From positions 8,143,550 through 8,207,549 of the forward strand of contig OZ199838.1 of the NCBI GenBank assembly GCA_964304625.1: a stretch of 64,000 bases of DNA, given 5' to 3'. The notes under the pieces were generated by a model. It saw only the letters and a list, made by a program, of their open reading frames with translations. It made no database searches and was not told where the DNA came from. Below, in pieces: positions 37,741 to 49,374 of this stretch. The position numbers and the translations under genes are program-made. This DNA comes from Kudoa neothunni. Taxonomy: Eukaryota > Animalia > Cnidaria. Each line of letters begins with the position of its first letter. Positions within the stretch are counted from its first letter, which is position 1.

Positions 37741-39195
37741 AATTTGACGATAGAGAACAAAAAATTCGCAAAGGGAAAATCTGTCCGCACGTGCGCAAAG
37801 AGACAATTTTTAAAATGAAATATAATTTAATTTTAGAAGGAAAACTATTCGAATTTCCAAGAATATGTTTTAGCGATAAGATTTAGAAAATCCATTCCTT
37901 TAAATGAATTGTAATTTTCACATATTGATTTGATACCAGCTATCTTTTTATCATACATTGAGCGTGCAGTTTTCCCTGTGTTTGATAGTTGGAATTCGAT
38001 ATCGTTTTCAATATTGCTTTGACAAACTTTTAGCTTATCACAAAAAGAAGGCAACTCTGGATGACACTGTTCAAAGCGGTTTTTGAAAATTCTGTCATAT
38101 GCATTCCAGCACTCAATTGGATATTTGGAGCCATTCAAGAAATTTTTTTCAAAGTATTTAAAAAATTCTGACAAATTTAGTTCGTTGAAAGTAGATGATT
38201 TTTTAAGGATTTTTTTGTATTTAATATGGATAAAATCTGCAGGGACAAGAGCCAACGAAGAAACAGTTTTCATAAATAATTTGAATTCCTGATTATGAAG
38301 AAATTCTTCGGAGAGACCAAGCTGTTGAATCTTCCTCCAAAGGCATTGTCCTAGATGAAATAAACAAAAATAAACTTGACATTTTGTTGCTTTTAAAAAA
38401 GCAACAAACGCTGCAATTTCAAAATCGATGACCACGTAATCTGGAAGTTTCTGTTCGCATTTTTCATAAAGGGTACTAAAGGCACGCATGTAATCGTTTT
38501 CCTTTTTACTTTTCATTAGAATAAATGCTAATGAAAAGGTTTTAGAGTTAATTTCTCCATGAATTGCGTAGAGTTGCAAAAATTCATTTGGGCAAACTTT
38601 AAACGTTCCATCGGAAATCAAGCATCTTGAATTTTTCAAGTGAACCAAATTTCGTTCAGTTGCAAAAATGACGATTCTATCGCTTTCATTCACTCCAGAG
38701 TCATATAAACAAAAGGGCTCATTTCGAAATGTACAAAAGTTCAGTTCTTGAAGGTTTTTGGTTTTGTCCACAACTATGGAATTTCTCTTTCTGATGTTCC
38801 GAATATTTTTAAAAGTATGGCTTTTATTAAGTACTGGAAGATCACACAATTTTAAGGTACTTGTTGCGTAGTATACGAGGTATTCTTAGCAATATCTTGA
38901 ATCTTGGACGACAAAAATCTTTTTGACATGTCATTTTCAGACAATGTATGGTTATGATCATCAGTTGATAAAATAATTTCCACTGGATCCGAAAGATTCG
39001 TTCTGATTTTCGCAGGGCAAGTTCTCTTTTGGCATCTCCAAGAAGTAAACATTTTTCCAACATGGTGTTTAGTATAAAAATAGTTTTTATAAAAAATCAA
39101 ATCCGTATTGGAGCATGTTTTAATAATTTGGCAATTTGGACTAACCATTATAAAGCAGATTAACTCGCGCGGACAGATTTTCTCCATGTCAAATT
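37741..39195 (-). mobile_element. MULE (Mutator-like) transposon: FLYWCH zinc finger + DDE transposase, one frameshift at ~38850
   Basis: FYT...WRCQKRTCPA...HNH, then DGTFKVCP...QLY, IDFE and CLFHLGQCLWRKIQQLGL. Inverted repeat GAAAATCTGTCCGC near 37773 and 39182. Confidence 0.87.
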
Positions 39196-39271: not shown

Positions 39272-41067
39272 CAGTAGGTAATCGATTTTCGGTAATTTCA
39301 GACTATCTTCCCTTAAACATTATTCTAATATTTTAAACTATATATTTTATTTTGTTTGTCGGCTTAAACAATAGTTTACATAATTTTAAAAATTGAACAT
39401 TAGAAAGTGGGGTTTTCCTATTATTAACGCTTAACCGATTTTCCGTAACTTTTCAGCTATAGGCGGATTTAATGGTGCCTTTTTTTACATTTATATTTGG
39501 AAAGTTTAAAAATGGGGAAATAATAAAACTAAAATATAAATTTAATGTTTTTTTTTAAGTACACTAAACAGGAGTGCGAAAAAACTACTTTTCGTAAATT
39601 TAAGCTTCCTTCTATTTCTACTCTAGATATCATCTTAATTAGGAAGAAAGATATAATTTATGTTATAAACTGGCTTGGCTTCTTCAGAGAGAAAAAATTT
39701 TAAACAATGTTCAAATCACGACATCAATACTATAGTATATGAATGGGTGATTTACTTGAGATAAACGAAAATTGAACTATCTGCTCATGATATACACGAA
39801 AGAAACCAATTGGCAAAAGAATTGAACCTAAGCGTAGTAATGATTCATGATTGATTTCTTGGTTTTAAATCGCGATGGAATTTAAAAATATCACTGCCCA
39901 TGGCGATGCTGCTTATGTTGACTAAAGTTTTGTAGAAAATTGGTAACAACGATGACTGTACCTATAACCTTGACGAAACTGCACTATTGTACTAACATTA
40001 TTGAGGTCCATTATCTTTAAAGCTATATTTTGTCGAGAGAAAAAAATTCCAACGGGAAAAAAATCTAAAAAATAATTACTGTTTTACGGCATGTATCTAT
40101 GCCTGGAGGTTGCATTGGTTCTCTTGTGATTGGAGATCACAAAAACCACATTGTTTTAAGAATGCCAAAACATTTATAGTAAAATACAAATCAAACAGGA
40201 AAGAATGGATGACTAGGGAAACATTTAACAAATATCTTTCTAATTTTAACAATGTATCCAAAACGAAGTACAAGAAAGTTTACTATTTCTTAATAATGCC
40301 AATTGACACGCCGAAATTCATTTGTCCAATATCGTTCTTATACTCCTTACAAAAGACTCAACTAGCGTTTTGCAACTATTAGACATTAGACTATGGAATC
40401 ATTTGCTCATTCAAATAAAATTACAAAAATACTTAAATAGAAAGCCATATCGCTGCAATTAGCAATGATATAAATACATCCTCCCAAGGTATGCTTCAAA
40501 CATTGTTCCTAATTATAAATAATGGGACGGTGTTTCAAAGGATATTGTATTTAACCGATTCAGAAAATATGAGTTTCCTACAGCCGATAAATACGAGCAT
40601 TCATCAAATATTAATTTTAGAAATAAATAATTCACAGCTAGAAATTCCGAGATTATTCAAGAGGAAGTCATTATGCCTACATCAAAACACTTTGACAAGC
40701 TCACTCCTTTGATTGTTGAATCTGTTAACTTTGAAACCGAAGATGAACGACTGGTAGACTTTATATCATCAAAAGATTCGTTTAAATGTTTAAACATGCA
40801 GAAAAATATATAGAGAAGAATTGATTATCTGGACGAAATGATGAGGTAGAATCATAAAATTACGGTATACACAAAAAAATATGGTTAAAAATAACATAAA
40901 ACAGCATACTGTTTCAATAAAAGTAGATAATTGTATAAATGGGATTAATTTCTTTAAAATAGGTCTATTGTGCGCGCGCAGAAAGTTACAGAAAATACGT
41001 CACTGACGCATTTTCAGTACCTTACCCATGGTCCCGAGGGGATTAGGGGAAAATCTATTACCTACTG
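39272..41067 (+). mobile_element. Tigger/pogo transposon, decayed
   Basis: TA TSDs and TIR CAGTAGGTAATCGATTTT/AAAATCTATTACCTACTG. Fragments NLDETAL and IG..QKPHCFKN...YKSNRKEWMT. A second Tigger-like C-terminus (...ITITKYFSQK*) follows at 41070-41167. Confidence 0.8.
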
Positions 41068-41511
41068 TAGTTATAAACGTCAAACGGATATTGAACAAGA
41101 AGTACACAACATAATTGTCAGAAAACTTAAAAATATTACAATAACTAAGTATTTTTCCCAAAAATAATTTATTATAGTGGACTTACAGCATTTTTTCTTG
41201 TATAGTATCGCGCGCGCAATCTCAGAAATTACGAACCACACGTCACTCAATTAATAGTTGACATAGATGCCTGTACAATATGGCATAGTGATGTTAGGTC
41301 GAGATCGCATACCATGAGGTTTCCCGTTCGAAGCCTAGTCCGGGCGTTCCTGTACTTCTAGTCCGAAAGTAAATAGGAAAGCTGTAGTAATCGCAAGGAT
41401 CTACGATTTATCGTGACCTTGCTTGCAACTAGGATGGGAGCCTGGCAGAAGGGTAGATTCGGACGCTCGTAAACGCCAGGGTACAGGAACGAAATACAAC
41501 CCAGTAGGGGG

Positions 41512-41640
41512 TGTAACACGGATTAACATTGTTAATCCATGTTATCAGAATAACATACATAGGCTGCCGTAAGGCGGCCTTAGCGTTCGGATAGTTTAGT
41601 TATTGTCCTTTTGTTGAACGTGGACTTTCTTGGCGTTACA
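41512..41640 (+). repeat. 5' LTR
   Basis: Base-for-base identical to 45712-45840. Confidence 0.97.
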
Positions 41641-41702
41641 TTTGGTGACAGGGGAACAAACGAACAAATAAAAACTGAATAACGTACATAATTGGTTCAA
41701 TA

Positions 41703-42455
41703 ATGGATAACAACATCACTGTGAGCAAAATAACGGCTCAGAATTTCGAACGAGCTTGGGCTAGAGTTCTGGCAGTAGTTAGCCACCAGAAATGGGACGA
41801 CAGTCGAATAATCACTTTTATTCCCACAGTCCTCGATGATTTTATGTTCGACGCATATCAAACTTTGGAGGAACGACAAAAGAAATCTCCCCAAACGCTG
41901 AAGGAAGCCTTGGCTAAAACCGCTGGCGTACTTCAAACGGAAAGCTCAACCACCGCACAAAGATTTCTGGAACGCCATCAAGGCGCGGATGAAAATGTTT
42001 CAACGTACGCCATCGAACTAAAAAAACTTTTCTTGACTGCGTTCCCAGAGGACGATATTTCCAGCCCAGTGTTGCTACAGAAATTTGTATGTGGCCTGAG
42101 GGCTGACATCAAAAGCTTCTTAACAAAAATTGGAATTCCGCAAACTTTGGAGGAGGCAATTGGCGATGCAATGCGGATCGAGTTGACCGATGAGCGGACG
42201 GAACTATCCCTTAATGCGTTGGCATCCAAAGGAGATAACACCCACTCCAAACTACACGATGAAATTCAATCATTAACCAAAATGGTCAATGAACTCGGAA
42301 TGGAACTGAAACATCTAAAAGGCTGGAACAACCGAGACAAACCAAGGAACGGAAATTGCTTTACGTGCGGGAAACGTGGCCACTGGAAACAAGAGTGTCC
42401 TTTAAACGTGAAAAGGTTGCGAGGGCAGGCAAGAAACTCGCAACCTCATTACTAA
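41703..42455 (+). CDS. gag: Gag with CCHC zinc knuckle
   Basis: Q...ENVSTYAIELKKL major-homology-like region, FVCGL, and CFTCGKRGHWKQEC. Confidence 0.93.
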   Translation: MDNNITVSKITAQNFERAWARVLAVVSHQKWDDSRIITFIPTVLDDFMFDAYQTLEERQKKSPQTLKEALAKTAGVLQTESSTTAQRFLERHQGADENVSTYAIELKKLFLTAFPEDDISSPVLLQKFVCGLRADIKSFLTKIGIPQTLEEAIGDAMRIELTDERTELSLNALASKGDNTHSKLHDEIQSLTKMVNELGMELKHLKGWNNRDKPRNGNCFTCGKRGHWKQECPLNVKRLRGQARNSQPHY

Positions 42456-42461
42456 CTTGCC
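42401..42461 (+). promoter_or_regulatory. -1 programmed ribosomal frameshift signal (U UUA AAC + H-type pseudoknot)
   Basis: Heptamer 42401-07 is in the gag frame, followed by a 6-nt spacer. Stem 1 is AGGTTGCGAG/CTCGCAACCT and stem 2 is GGCAAG/CTTGCC. pol is in the -1 frame. Confidence 0.88.
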
Positions 42462-45400
42462 AAAATAAACTATTACCCTACATAGAGTGTTGTTTGAATG
42501 GTTATTTTTTGCTGGACACAGGCGCAAATGTTTCATTAATTCATAACAAGTGGATCAAAACCGCCAAGCCTAACTATGATAATGTTGAGTGCACGAATGG
42601 AACAAATTTACTTATCTCTGGTGTGGTATCCCAAACTTTTAAAATTGATAATAAAAATTTCAACCATACATTCTTATGCTCCAAAGACCTTAAATACGAT
42701 GGTATTCTTGGATATGATTTCGTGAGCAAGGTACGTGCTACAATTGACACCAATACATCTACATTTAATATTGATGGATGGAGCGCACCCCTCATCTTGG
42801 CTAATAAAGGCTATGGCGCTAATTACAACAATGGCATTTTGTTAGAGGAAACTCAATTAGTTAAATTCTTGGAGGGATATTCTGAGGTCTTTGCCGACGA
42901 TGATTATTCGCTTGGATCAACCTCAGTAATTTCTCATAGAATTAATACGAACTCTGATCCTATACGTCAACCTCCTAGAAGAATTCCCACTGCACTCCGC
43001 CAGGTTGTAAAAGAAAATATTGATAAAATGTTAAAAATGGGGATAATATCCCACAGTGATAGCCCCTGGTCTTCACCGATTGTCATGGTGAAGAAAAAGG
43101 ATGGATCGCATAGATTCTGCGTCGACTATCGGAAACTAAATGCAAATGTTGAAATAGACCCATACCCCCTCCCAAGAATTGACGACACCCTGCAAAGCTT
43201 GGCCGGTTCTTCGGTATTTTCGACGCTAGACCTTAAATCGGGCTATTGGCAGATAGAGATGTCACCCCACGATAGGAAGAAAACGGCCTTTATAACACCG
43301 TTTGGATTATACGAATTTAATGTTATGCCGTTTGGTCTAAATAACGCCCCTGCAACATTCCAAAGAGCAATGGCAACTATACTCAGGAACTGTGTGGGAA
43401 GAAATTGCTTAATATATTTGGACGATATTATTGTATTCTCGAACTCTAGAAATCAACATCTAAAGGATCTTATAGGGATACTCAATAAACTTAAGGCTAA
43501 TGGCCTAAAACGTCATAGAAAAAAAATGCAAATTCTTCCAAACGAATGTTAAATTTCTTGGTCATGTGATATCCTCTGAAGGAATCAAAGTAGACGATAG
43601 TAAAATCAAAGCAATCTTGCAATATCCTTTACCCACAAACGAGAAGGAACTCCGCCGCTTCCTTGGCTTGGCAAATTATTACAGGACATTCATCAAAAAC
43701 TTCGCACAGATATCCGAACCCTTGTATAAATTAACAAGCAAGAACACAAAGTTTATTTGGAATAGCGATTGTCAAAAATCTTTCAAGACTGTTCTACAGA
43801 AACTATCATCAGCCCCAATATTGGCATATCCTGACTACTCCAAACCGTTTTGCCTAACCACAGACGCTTCGAACGTAGCAGTTGGTGCCATATTGAGTCA
43901 AGACATTCCCGGTACAGGTGGCGTTATTGCATACTTCAGTCGGACATTAACCAAAGCAGACAGAAACTACTCCACCTTTGACAAGGAAGCATTGGCAATC
44001 GTATCAGCGATAAAAGAATTTCGACACCACCTGTATGGGCGAAGCTTCAACATTTACACAGATCACAATCCTCTGTGCTACTTGAACAGTTTGAAGGACT
44101 CTCACGGCAGGATAGCAAGGTGGTTAACGTTCTTGCAAGACTTCGATTTCAAGATCCACTACAAACGAGGAAGCATAAATACAAATGCTGACGCAATGTC
44201 CAGAATAGAAACAACAATCAATTCTTTGGAAATCAACACTACAGTACTGGAAGAACTTAAAAAAAACACTTATAGTGATGCCTACCTTGAAGGCTACAGA
44301 AAGCGGATTTTGAAGAATGGTGGCATGTATAAAACCAAAAGAGGAAGTTTTTCAATTCTGGAGAATGGCCTAATATGTCGAGAATACGCCCTTAATGGAG
44401 AGAAATATCATCAGATTTGTATCCCAGAAAAATTACGTAACCTTTGCCTCAGTGAAATGCATGATCAAATGTTCCACCATGGTTGTTTCAAAACTTTCGA
44501 TAATGTTAGAACAAGATATTATTGGCCAGGATATTACATCCAAACAAATAAATATGTCTCCGAGTGCACAATTTGTCAAAAACACCGAAACTCGTCGGCC
44601 GCAAAACCGCCATTGGAACATTTCAAGCCTTCCCGTCCCTTCGATATTATACAATGCGACGTGGTTGGACCACTTGAAACTACTGTGAGAGGTAACAAGT
44701 ACATCCTAGTTATAACTGATATATTTTCCAAATGGGTCGAAGCGTTCCCTCTGCCAGCAGTGACGTCCCGAGATTTTGTTGATATTTTAGTGAACCATAT
44801 CGTAAGCAGATTTGGGATCCCCCGACAAATCCACACCGACCAAGGTACCAACTTCACCTCGAAAATAGTAGATGAATTCTGTCAGAATATGAATATAGCC
44901 AAAACAAGAACGACAAGTTACCACCCGGAAGGAAATGGAGTCGTAGAAAGATTCAACAGGACTCTAAAAGAGATGCTAAAAAAATGTTGCAACGCGGAGG
45001 AAAATTGGGATTTATACTTACCATTTTTACTGCTAGTATACCGAAATACCACCCATGAGACGATCCGTTGTAGCCCCTCTGAAATCCTTTTTGGACGACG
45101 ACTACCTATGCCGTGTGACCATTTTGAAGAACTACACAATTCCAAACACTCCAACATGTCGCAATATATAAGTAACGCCCGGAAACAAATCAAAAAATTT
45201 TGGTCGTCTTCTAAAAAAAATATGGAAAAGTCATTCAAAAAAATGGAAAGATACCACAAACATGGGAATTATGATCCAATCACACCAGGAAACTTTGCGT
45301 GGCTGAATAATCCAATCAAACACTCCTCTAAATTTAGTCATAATTGGTCAGGCCCCTATAAAATCATTTCGTGCCGAAGACAAGTATATACGATCGAGGA

Positions 45401-45716
45401 TATAAATAAAAAAAGATTCACAGTGAATAGAAGCAGACTCCGAGAATTTAGAAATCCATCTGCAGACGTATCGTATCAACCATGCAAACCTACCATCAGC
45501 CAACCCACAATTGTGCAGGGTATTAATGACGACTCCGGAGATGTTTTCATCAGACTTGACGAGAATACGTGGAATAATGATACCAGCGGCAGTCATGGAA
45601 CTAACCAGCAAATAACGCCCGTGCCTACCCAAAGTCATGAACGCCCGACCAGATCAAAGAAACCTCCAAGCTGGTTGTCTGATTTCCGCCATAATCTTAT
45701 GGGGGGAGGTGTGTAA
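42401..45716 (+). CDS. pol: Pol (protease, RT, RNase H, integrase), interrupted by one extra A in an A8 run at 43519-26
   Basis: LLDTGA protease, YLDD RT, TDAS RNase H, HHCC + DDE integrase and a GPY motif. Removing one A restores RKKCKFFQTNVKFLGHVI. Confidence 0.93.
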
Positions 45717-45840
45717 CACGGATTAACATTGTTAATCCATGTTATCAGAATAACATACATAGGCTGCCGTAAGGCGGCCTTAGCGTTCGGATAGTTTAGT
45801 TATTGTCCTTTTGTTGAACGTGGACTTTCTTGGCGTTACA
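45712..45840 (+). repeat. 3' LTR
   Basis: Identical to the 5' LTR. The pol stop codon lies within its first bases. Confidence 0.97.
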
Positions 45841-47546
45841 GGGGGTTTTCGTAGAGCCGACGCCCGCTATCAGATGACTTTCCCAGACTAATTCTGGGTT
45901 AGTCCAAGGTATGGTTGGGATGGTGGTTGCTCCGAAACGAGGATGTTTAATGGGTTAAAATCTCACACTACCGCATAAATGTAAGTCGCCTTAATATGAC
46001 GCTGCGGAGCTAAATGTGGAAATTGAGAAGGCCTAACCAGCTCGAACTTCACAACCTAACAACAAGTTGCGCCAGGGGTTTGACCTTGCAAATTACACAT
46101 GCTGGTGGCTGAAGATGGGAAATCGTTCCCGATTTTCCTTCTCTCTTATTTTGCATGAAGCCTCCGATGCCCAAAGGAAAATCTCTGCGTAAAGATAACC
46201 AGAGATTTCCTAAAGTCTTTTAGGGAACAACTGGTACACAGAACCTACCCACGACAAAACGCTTTTCCCGCGGAAGGCGGTGGCACAGAAGGTCGAAACG
46301 GAGGCTTCTACATCTTCGGAATTTGGCAACCCTCACCCTATTTAACATTAGTTAATAATCATTAGTATTTTAACCTTTTTCGCTTTGTTGCTTTGATTGT
46401 CTTTTCTCTTCGCCCTTTAGCATTCTTATCATACATAACAATATCAAAAGGATTAATCTAAATAATATGGGCTGGATATGTAATAAAAAAATATATATTA
46501 CATAATTTATTAATCCCCTCGGGACCATACGGGGTCATTCGTGACCCCATTTTTGGTAAATGTTTGTTTTTACCTGCTTAAACTTTTCATTTGAATTTTT
46601 TGGTTCACGTGATCTTAGATTAACAATACTGTTCAGAAATACGAAATTTCAGATAAAGTATAGTATTCTACGGTTCAACAATTTTGTTTAATTTTACGTA
46701 TAACCAATAATGTTATTTAAAACTATTTTATATGGTTGTATCAAGTGTATTTAGTTTATTTAATAAGAAAAATGATCATTCCAATATATATTGTCACGAC
46801 CAAACTGAGGAATATTGTGATTTGTAACTATTCTTGTTATCTGATATGATTCCAAAGATGGAATGGGATTCAAGAGACTAATCCCATTATTATTGTCCTC
46901 CAGGTTATTGCGCTTTGAAACCCGAACAGGTTGCCTGATGTGCTTTTAAAATACTTACCTTTTCCATGAATTAAATTTAAATCGTAGTAAATTAAAAGGT
47001 GGCCACATTTTACTAAAAATTAATAGATTAAAACTTAGTCACATTATTTCCGTGTCATGATACCGCCAAATTTCAATGATTCCCTATTCCACAAAACTAA
47101 CAAGTAGACATTTATGTTAATCGTTTTATTTTTTTAATTGTCAATGAAATAAAGCTAGGCCATTTCCTTATAACCATTGAAACAATTAAAATCAAGATGA
47201 AAGAAATAAGCTTTGAATCATATTTATATTCTGATTAAAAATAGTTTCACTCATAATTCAAATAAATCCATCCTTACTTATTTAGACTTAACATTATTCT
47301 TTATTTCTCAAGATGTGTTGTAAACATATCTTAGTGTAAATCAATAATGGATTATCGAATTTCACCAGGGTTACCTCCGGTTAGTGCCATGGTGGAGCAG
47401 CCTAATATTAATATTAAAGTGACGTAGAAGTTTCAATTTTGTTACATTCAATTAAAAACGAAACCGAAATAGTTATATCTATTACATCCACCATTTGAAG
47501 CCTGGTTAAACTACAGTCTACGTGTACCCAGTTCGGAAGATATCAT

Positions 47547-48882: not shown

Positions 48883-49374
48883 TTACATTGGAACGTTTCT
48901 TAAATCCGTAGTCCCATAAAACTGAACACAACGAATTCGAGAATCCATTCCATCGTGGTGATTGCAATCTATAACAAGTCTCACATGCATCGCAACGACT
49001 GGTTTATCTTCAGTGTTACAGCTAAAACATATCCAACCAGTGTATTTTGGTATTCTGAAGTTGCTTATATTGACCAAATCATTCAGATCATTCCCGACAA
49101 GAAGAGTTGTGCTACTCGGAGCATAACTATCATCTTTCGTATAATCTACATATATGTACAATGACTGCAACAGGACTGCATAGGGAAATCTAGCGTCGAT
49201 TATATGAGGAAGAGTCCCATCAGATTGCCAATAACTATCACTGCATAATGATCTCATATTAGCTAAATCCGAATCTTTTCTTGTACTCGATGCTTCATAC
49301 AGAGCTATGGAACCAATCTCTTCGTATAAATTTGAACGTTCACTATCTTCGAAAGGAGGGGGAAGCTCTGACAT
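48883..49374 (-). CDS. ANAPC10: Anaphase-promoting complex subunit 10 (DOC1), single coding exon
   Basis: SYWQSDGTLPH, YVDYTKDDSYAPS and NHHDGMDSRIR match APC10 signature motifs. Confidence 0.9.
   Translation of the reverse strand: MSELPPPFEDSERSNLYEEIGSIALYEASSTRKDSDLANMRSLCSDSYWQSDGTLPHIIDARFPYAVLLQSLYIYVDYTKDDSYAPSSTTLLVGNDLNDLVNISNFRIPKYTGWICFSCNTEDKPVVAMHVRLVIDCNHHDGMDSRIRCVQFYGTTDLRNVPM

Follow-up and report, generated by a model that had tools for sequence, protein, structure and literature searches.

The window analysed here is a stretch of 64,000 nucleotides of Kudoa neothunni DNA (contig OZ199838.1, assembly GCA_964304625.1), and the part of interest is, with high confidence, an intergenic, repeat-rich stretch in which mobile elements have piled up by successive insertion. 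An APC10 exon adjoins the region. An island of 42-48% GC, set between flanks of 25-33% GC, is interrupted by an LTR retrotransposon and contains no open reading frame of at least 60 amino acids, so that an initial annotation was right to describe an ORF-less island of about half GC. The same annotation rejoined the two sides of the insertion into a single, highly structured unit of about 720 nt, and proposed that it might be a novel large non-coding RNA or ribozyme, a non-autonomous retroelement RNA or a structured LINE UTR. The elements upstream of and around the insertion, together with the repeats that bound the region, are given below in window positions.

41068 to 41249: interspersed repeat of about 182 bp, unrelated to the island, with at least 107 first-look candidates; it ends 19 nt short of the SINE start
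41269 to 41511, + strand: 5' part of a SINE copy (consensus positions 1-243), 92% identical to the 489-nt consensus
41269 to 41275, + strand: acceptor-like arm of the SINE head
41281 to 41291, + strand: A box, TGGCATAGTGA, position mapped
41326 to 41335, + strand: B box, GTTCGAAGCC, position mapped
41339 to 41345, + strand: 3' acceptor-like arm of the SINE head, TCCGGGC
41345 to 41355 with 41481 to 41491, + strand: 11-bp stem, from motif coordinates
41507 to 41511 (left) and 45841 to 45845 (right): 5-bp target-site duplication GGGGG, product of the Gypsy insertion
41512 to 45840, + strand: Ty3/Gypsy-type LTR retrotransposon, from repeat, ORF and Pfam analysis
41512 to 41640 and 45712 to 45840, + strand: its identical 129-bp LTRs, TGTAACAC...GTTACA
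45846 to 46092, + strand: 3' part of the SINE copy (consensus positions 244-488), ending in ...GGGGTTTGACCTTGCAAA
46503 to 46700: start only of another interspersed repeat, with 37 matches, which continues past 46700

The insertion shows the features by which a Ty3/Gypsy element is recognized, namely paired LTRs, a duplication in the 4-6-bp range and the order gag-PR-RT-RNaseH-INT. Pfam models identify gag (with a zinc knuckle), PR, RT, RNaseH and INT, and pol is split between two frames near 43552-43566. The element is young. It entered the body of a SINE of about 490 nt that had earlier retroposed into this site, duplicating GGGGG as it did so. Excision at this 5-bp duplication, joining 41511 to 45846, was correctly performed in the initial annotation: uninterrupted genomic copies cross the joint, where the SINE consensus reads ...CAGTAGGGGGTTTCC...

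Once rejoined, the island is, with high confidence, not one unit; it consists of two unrelated pieces of mobile DNA that abut, a SINE copy split by the Gypsy element and a shortened copy of an older LTR-like repeat. The first piece comprises 41269-41511 and 45846-46092 (490 nt). Homology to the high-copy repeat ends at 46092, and 46082-46440 belongs to another family. The proposal of a single novel structured RNA or ribozyme gene of about 720 nt is largely refuted by this break in copy number, since its two halves differ in abundance and adjoin in this window only, and its left half belongs to a family that bears the marks of retroposition (target-site duplications and an A tail). The whole case is ordinary biology, involving known kinds of element.

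The SINE family has a 489-nt consensus, to which 40 full-length, uninterrupted copies show 85-93% identity, with a mean family divergence of roughly 10%. First-look candidates numbered 185 for the 5' piece and 351 for the 3' piece. When patterns from the head, body and tail were counted across the 40-Mb genome with up to 3 mismatches, 138, 126 and 269 occurrences were found, respectively, and reversed-pattern controls gave none. The tail thus outnumbers the head and body about two to one, which indicates that other elements have this tail too. The body, about 410 nt long and richer in G+C, ends in GGTTTGACCTTGTAAAC and a short A run; the 22-nt tail also occurs as the variant GGTTTTACC, and other copies finish in C(A)7-9. 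Copies elsewhere are flanked by target-site duplications of 9-16 bp, one directly at the 5' end and the other after the C(A)n tail. The flanks match better than the 95th percentile of a mismatched-flank control in 28 of 42 copies, and better than the 99th percentile in 19.

Copies with duplications of this kind point to target-primed reverse transcription by a LINE-encoded enzyme, and it is by this route that the SINE copies were presumably made. With hundreds of such copies, LINE-type retroposition has operated in Kudoa. No LINE partner and no tail-only match occur within the approximately 270 kb searched. It could also be that the body and tail, being common to at least one other abundant element, form a functional RNA module, such as a structure recognized by a LINE RT or even a catalytic fold, but this is unlikely.

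The head of the SINE, its first 77 nt, is a degenerate tRNA-like module with a 5-nt insert past the acceptor arm. TGGCATAGTGG occurs at position 13 and GTTCGAAGCC at position 58, and this spacing of 45 equals the distance from T8 to G53 in tRNA. GCCTGGA pairs with TCCGGGC, and the 3' acceptor-like strand starts exactly at tRNA position 66. Judged from these motifs, the head would be an internal Pol III promoter. The consensus lacks the T4 terminator (TTTT). ARAGORN finds no tRNA in the window or at 18 loci, the Rfam tRNA model has no match at E<=10 in the 111-nt head region, and, numbered as a tRNA, the head shows poor pairing in its D, anticodon and T stems; a tRNA derivation is therefore argued from motifs and geometry only. 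GCA falls at positions 34-36 in this numbering, weakly hinting at Cys as the parent among the genome's tRNA genes, of which at least 38 are confident.

All of the motifs and helix arms listed in the initial annotation are present exactly where it placed them, so that complementary segments do exist at every position on which the single-RNA proposal was built. Some are real features of a SINE RNA fold, some belong to a palindrome in the LTR-like repeat, and the rest are 6-8-mers that pair by chance. The real features of the SINE fold are the head and a stem of 11-13 bp that closes positions 78-223; among the listed helices within the SINE, only the 11-bp stem at 41345/41481 exceeds chance, by a rough, uncomputed estimate of the 6-8-bp complementary pairs expected in 490 nt.

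The description "highly structured" is true in a weak sense. The SINE consensus folds better than dinucleotide shuffles (z -2.95; none of 100 shuffles reached its stability), and its head alone reaches z -5.45. For the downstream repeat, referred to below as domain 2, the z scores are -2.9 (+ strand), a stability that none of 200 shuffles equalled, and -2.6 (- strand). The window copy of the SINE itself is no better than its shuffles (z -1.1 for the + strand, -1.9 for the - strand), and an intact copy gives z -0.8. Comparison with shuffles thus yields a modest gain only, although the consensus and domain 2, at about 3 SD, could be taken to favour a single structured RNA.

Covariation provides no such indication. 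Among 40 SINE copies, pair counting by script found 29 double changes against 34.8 expected, and predicted helix columns diverge by 9.8% compared with 7.5% for unpaired columns, so the helices do not evolve more slowly. Wobble pairs had been held to favour the + strand, but this argument fails: among variants seen in several copies, C>T is about as common as G>A, and the partner base never changes. In Rfam 15, no family, ribozymes included, matches the window region at E<=1; even at E<=10, nothing overlaps the SINE in any of 18 other copies, and two domain 2 copies are likewise free of matches. The lack of a known family would suit a novel RNA. Taken with the unrelated halves of different copy number and the lack of covariation, a novel large non-coding RNA or ribozyme spanning the rejoined sequence is nonetheless extremely improbable. 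The alternative of a non-autonomous retroelement RNA fares better, as it holds for the two thirds of the island that are a SINE copy.

That remaining third has the following features.

46082 to 46092, + strand: 11-nt junction microhomology, GACCTTGCAAA, found both at the 3' end of the SINE, where the consensus has GACCTTGTAAA, and in the adjoining repeat at its positions 13-23
46082 to 46440, + strand: domain 2 (the second domain of the initial annotation), which belongs to a distinct repeat family, non-coding, 318-363 bp long and with TG...CA ends, and here misses the first 12 nt
46176 to 46223, + strand: 48-nt palindromic segment, missing in two of the other domain 2 copies
46337 to 46346, + strand: TATA-like box, CCTATTTAAC, within domain 2 and kept among copies

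Full copies of domain 2 start with TGTTGTGT and end with ACACAACA, the 3' end reading ACACAAC(A/G) across the complete copies, and the two ends form an 8-nt terminal inverted repeat. There are five close copies and at least 36 profile matches, found on both strands, many of which keep the 3' end and start at variable positions. Three copies have 5-bp flanks that agree in 4 of their 5 bases, with boundaries that are uncertain by 1-2 nt. No frame is open across the copies, and the copies have no downstream genes in common. Domain 2 is an older, dispersed repeat, shortened at its 5' end in this copy, and with moderate confidence it is read as a solo LTR.

A direct pair of domain 2 copies at element-like spacing does not occur among the 36 profile matches, a search of limited sensitivity. 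The absence of paired copies hinting at a full-length LTR element would also suit a non-autonomous cut-and-paste element, either a Ginger-type or another MITE with TGT...ACA termini, and the termini fit TGTNR...YNACA, with flank matches of 4-5 bp. Such an element may be present, but this is a distinctly less probable reading: the terminal inverted repeat is just 8 nt, the internal TATA-like box and conserved segment resemble the U3/R layout of an LTR, and the preservation of 3' ends with variable starts in many of the profile matches also counts against it.

A second alternative, and a very unlikely one, is that domain 2 and its four close relatives are small structured RNA genes, for example a fast-evolving myxozoan snRNA-like or Pol III RNA beyond the reach of Rfam models. 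Beyond its stability relative to shuffles, a hairpin, GGGAAAATCG/CGATTTTCC, is found in all four copies compared, where some G-C pairs have become G-U on the + strand, and two compensatory pairs occur among the four sequences. Copies either have the whole 48-nt hairpin or lack it entirely, and the TATA-like box is conserved. However, the TG...CA ends, the inverted repeat and the duplication-like 5-bp flanks are marks of a mobile element, as are diverged and often truncated matches on both strands. Three of four copies have mismatches in the long closing helix, the optional hairpin is degraded in one copy (L062), homology continues about 100 nt beyond the TATA-like box into a T-rich region, and no Rfam family matches. 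Likenesses of domain 2 to motifs of SRP RNA, RNase P and MRP were considered and dropped, there being no model match.

The SINE copy in the window, fused to domain 2, has neither the C(A)7-9 tail nor a target-site duplication (its duplication score of 4.5 is below the control mean of 5.1). These missing parts, together with the 11-nt microhomology at the junction, suggest that the fusion most likely arose either by a microhomology-mediated deletion that joined the SINE tail to the repeat or by reverse transcription primed inside the SINE tail.

The genome of this species was reported as 40.2 Mb in three chromosomes plus a mitochondrial genome, with 30.4% GC, in a paper that makes no mention of SINEs (PMC12239612), and a 2026 preprint describes SINEs and LINEs as nearly absent from Myxozoa. 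The family defined here, by its consensus length, head geometry, tail, target-site duplications, copy number and divergence, is a SINE family in a myxozoan genome, and it seems to be new to the record of these parasites. Repeats are the sole annotation for 45% of the genome, and unclassified, lineage-specific SINEs probably hide in that portion. Were the SINE body a functional RNA module, a recently active LINE/SINE system in Myxozoa would be implied, in contrast to the near-absence described in the preprint. A false lead is also removed, as there is no 720-nt ribozyme here.

Among known systems, the structured RNAs and self-cleaving ribozymes of Rfam 15 resemble this region in predicted stems only, and none of them matches it. 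Domain 2 is closer to the solo LTRs of Ty3/Gypsy-like elements in its size (318-363 bp), TG...CA ends, short terminal inverted repeat, TATA-like box and duplication-like 5-bp flanks, and in being dispersed and non-coding. It differs in that no full-length element with domain 2 as its LTR was found among the 36 profile matches, and in that its flanks agree at 4 of 5 positions; it also bears no relation to the 129-bp LTR that the window's Gypsy element carries. The Kudoa SINE differs from the tRNA-related SINEs of the SINE2 class, which LINE enzymes mobilize, in being long, at 489 nt, and in having a head that is unseen by tRNA detectors and carries a 5-nt insert past the acceptor arm. In other respects it is like them: it is short and non-coding, it occurs in hundreds of dispersed copies, it has A and B box motifs at tRNA spacing within a head-body-tail layout, and it has an A-rich 3' end, variable duplications of 9-16 bp and a 3' end that is commoner than its head.

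The island formed by joining 41287-41511 to 45846-46340, which the initial annotation described as one highly structured RNA-like element of about 720 nt, is composite and ordinary: it consists of a SINE copy, which makes up its left two thirds and into which a Gypsy element has inserted, joined at its 3' end to an LTR-like repeat. The underlying observation was accurate; it is the single entity that does not hold. All of the helix arms are present where they were placed, no ORF outside the inserted element reaches 60 aa, and the G+C content is 42-48%, compared with 25-33% in the surroundings. The relevant features are as follows.

41068-41249 and 46503 onward: outer-flank repeats
41269-41511 and 45846-46092: the two parts of the SINE copy
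41507-41511 and 45841-45845: GGGGG, the 5-bp duplication flanking the LTR retrotransposon
41512-41640 and 45712-45840: identical 129-bp LTRs of this retrotransposon
46082-46092: overlap GACCTTGCAAA, shared by the SINE end (10 of 11 positions identical) and by positions 13-23 of the LTR-like repeat
46082-46440: LTR-like repeat

The ORFs of the inserted element follow the Ty3/Gypsy domain order (gag zinc knuckle, aspartic protease, RT, RNase H and integrase). Since its two LTRs are identical, the insertion is young, and this identity points to a very recent arrival of the element (41512-45840). Its pol is split over two frames, with the break near 43552-43566, at the RT/RNase H boundary.

The same genome was searched separately with the sequence from either side of the Gypsy insertion, giving 185 (5' side) and 351 (3' side) initial candidates. 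At the other loci examined the two sides are uninterrupted, and the rejoining of 41511 to 45846 is therefore correct. Across loci, homology always starts at 41269 and always stops at 46092; the unit is thus 41269-41511 plus 45846-46092, or 490 nt, and excludes 46093-46340. Identity between a 489-nt consensus and 40 full-length copies is 85-93% (92% for the window copy). The copies begin with GCCTGGACAATATGGCATAGTGG, end with GGTTTGACCTTGTAAAC followed by 7-9 A's, and have direct target repeats on both sides. When scored against a control of mismatched flank pairs, these repeats, which are 9-16 bp long and exactly abut the element ends, exceed the 95th percentile in 28 of 42 copies and the 99th in 19 of 42. 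Pattern counts in the genome, allowing up to 3 mismatches, are 138 for the SINE head, 126 for the body and 269 for the 22-nt tail; from the excess of tails over heads and bodies, the 3' tail is probably common to one or more further abundant elements. Reversed patterns, used as a control in the same search, gave 0 matches. A one-change tail variant, GGGGTTTTACCTTGTAAAC, occurs exactly at dozens of sites (for example 516832 and 3691783 on contig C1, and 1200282 on contig C3), most of them absent among the SINE body matches listed.

The SINE head contains an A box, TGGCATAGTGG, at consensus position 13, which fully fits the A-box consensus (TRGCNNAGTGG), and a B box, GTTCGAAGCC, at position 58. 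Their spacing of 45 nt is that of tRNA positions 8 and 53. TCCGGGC starts exactly at the equivalent of tRNA position 66 and pairs with GCCTGGA (positions 1-7), with 5 additional nt after this 5' acceptor-like arm. Taken by itself, the head has a far more stable fold than its shuffles (z -5.45). Because neither ARAGORN nor the Rfam tRNA model matches the head, and its inner stems are poorly paired, it can be called tRNA-like only in geometry and promoter motifs, which falls short of demonstrating tRNA derivation. The SINE consensus contains no TTTT run, which would be compatible with Pol III read-through. Searching the 40-Mb genome with the tRNA model yields 2556 initial candidates, and among the 63 scored only 38 are significant; the number of candidates may be raised by tRNA-like SINE heads.

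Folding energies were compared with those of dinucleotide shuffles. The consensus (-180.6 kcal/mol; shuffles, -161.6 +/- 6.4) has a z-score of -2.95 for the + strand and -1.79 for the - strand, and consensus segment 78-265, closed by the 11-bp stem noted initially, gives -2.5. The proposed high degree of structure holds only in modest form for the consensus, and single copies resemble shuffles (-1.1 for the window and -0.8 for L033, an intact copy elsewhere). Among the 40 copies, pair-keeping double changes number 29, compared with 34.8 expected under independence, and divergence is 9.8% in paired and 7.5% in unpaired columns. Nearly all of the 52 variants common to at least 6 copies are C>T or G>A changes whose partner base stays as it was, which removes the argument that wobble pairs favor the + strand. 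This pattern looks like that of neutrally decaying retroposed copies; such decay is uninformative about the master RNA, on which only the modest consensus z-score bears. No Rfam family, self-cleaving ribozymes included, matches the window or 18 further SINE copies.

The supposed second domain of this RNA is instead a separate repeat (46082-46440), with only four other close matches in the genome (69-82% identity), none of which adjoins a SINE. A profile made from four copies finds at least 36 matches, which are spread over both strands and in many cases partial. Two equal-scoring matches on the same strand of contig C2 (171416-171687 and 203750-204021), 32 kb apart, suggest a segmental duplication. 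Complete copies are 318-363 bp long, starting with TGTTGTGT and ending with ACACAAC(A/G), ends that form a TG...CA terminal inverted repeat; three copies lie between 5-bp flanks with 4 of 5 positions identical. About 30 nt beyond a TATA-like box comes a conserved T-rich segment, an arrangement that fits the U3/R layout of an LTR, and a solo LTR from an old family is the somewhat favored reading. An element of the Ginger-like or another terminal-inverted-repeat type is second, as a rather unlikely assignment, and membership in an RNA gene family is very unlikely. The fold exceeds chance moderately (z -2.9 and -2.6), one hairpin, GGGAAAATCG-loop-CGATTTTCC, is conserved, and just two of four copies contain a 48-nt palindromic segment. 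The hairpin loop is GAAA in the copy at L063 (1526-1546) and TTTC or TTCC in the others (46117-46138 in the window copy); the loop is reverse-complemented, a hairpin-inversion footprint. Loop inversion and the optional segment are DNA-level palindrome behavior as much as RNA behavior. Among the copies there is no conserved reading frame, and no neighboring genes are in common.

Where the SINE meets the probable solo LTR, the window SINE copy has neither an A tail nor a target-site duplication, and the first 12 nt of the LTR-like repeat are absent. The junction could have arisen by deletion between two microhomologous sites, or by reverse transcription primed within the SINE tail at this target; both routes fit.

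Near the island are MULE/FLYWCH fragments, hAT fragments and an APC10 gene. Two copies of the LTR-like repeat have FLYWCH zinc-finger and MULE transposase ORFs nearby (window 37848-39193, - strand; L063 3-1136, + strand), in opposite orientations relative to it; with MULEs so common in this genome, the proximity is probably coincidental. The whole nest is enclosed by the arms of a perfect 18-nt inverted repeat, ATGGTCCCGAGGGGATTA/TAATCCCCTCGGGACCAT (41028-41045 and 46511-46528), with no further similarity between its two sides. The interspersed repeat from near 46503 (37 matches) begins with the right arm, which may be a transposon terminus. An exon of APC10 (anaphase-promoting complex subunit 10; 48886-49374, - strand) has a strong Pfam match and no relatives at E<=1e-20 in a large protein collection, which agrees with the rapid protein evolution reported for myxozoans.

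The published Kudoa neothunni assembly comprises 40.2 Mb, made up of three chromosomes and a circular mitochondrial genome, with 30.4% GC and 45.6% repeats, and SINEs go unmentioned in that paper (PMC12239612). A 2026 preprint describes SINEs and LINEs as nearly absent from Myxozoa; the genome paper on another myxozoan lists 2.3 Mb of SINE.
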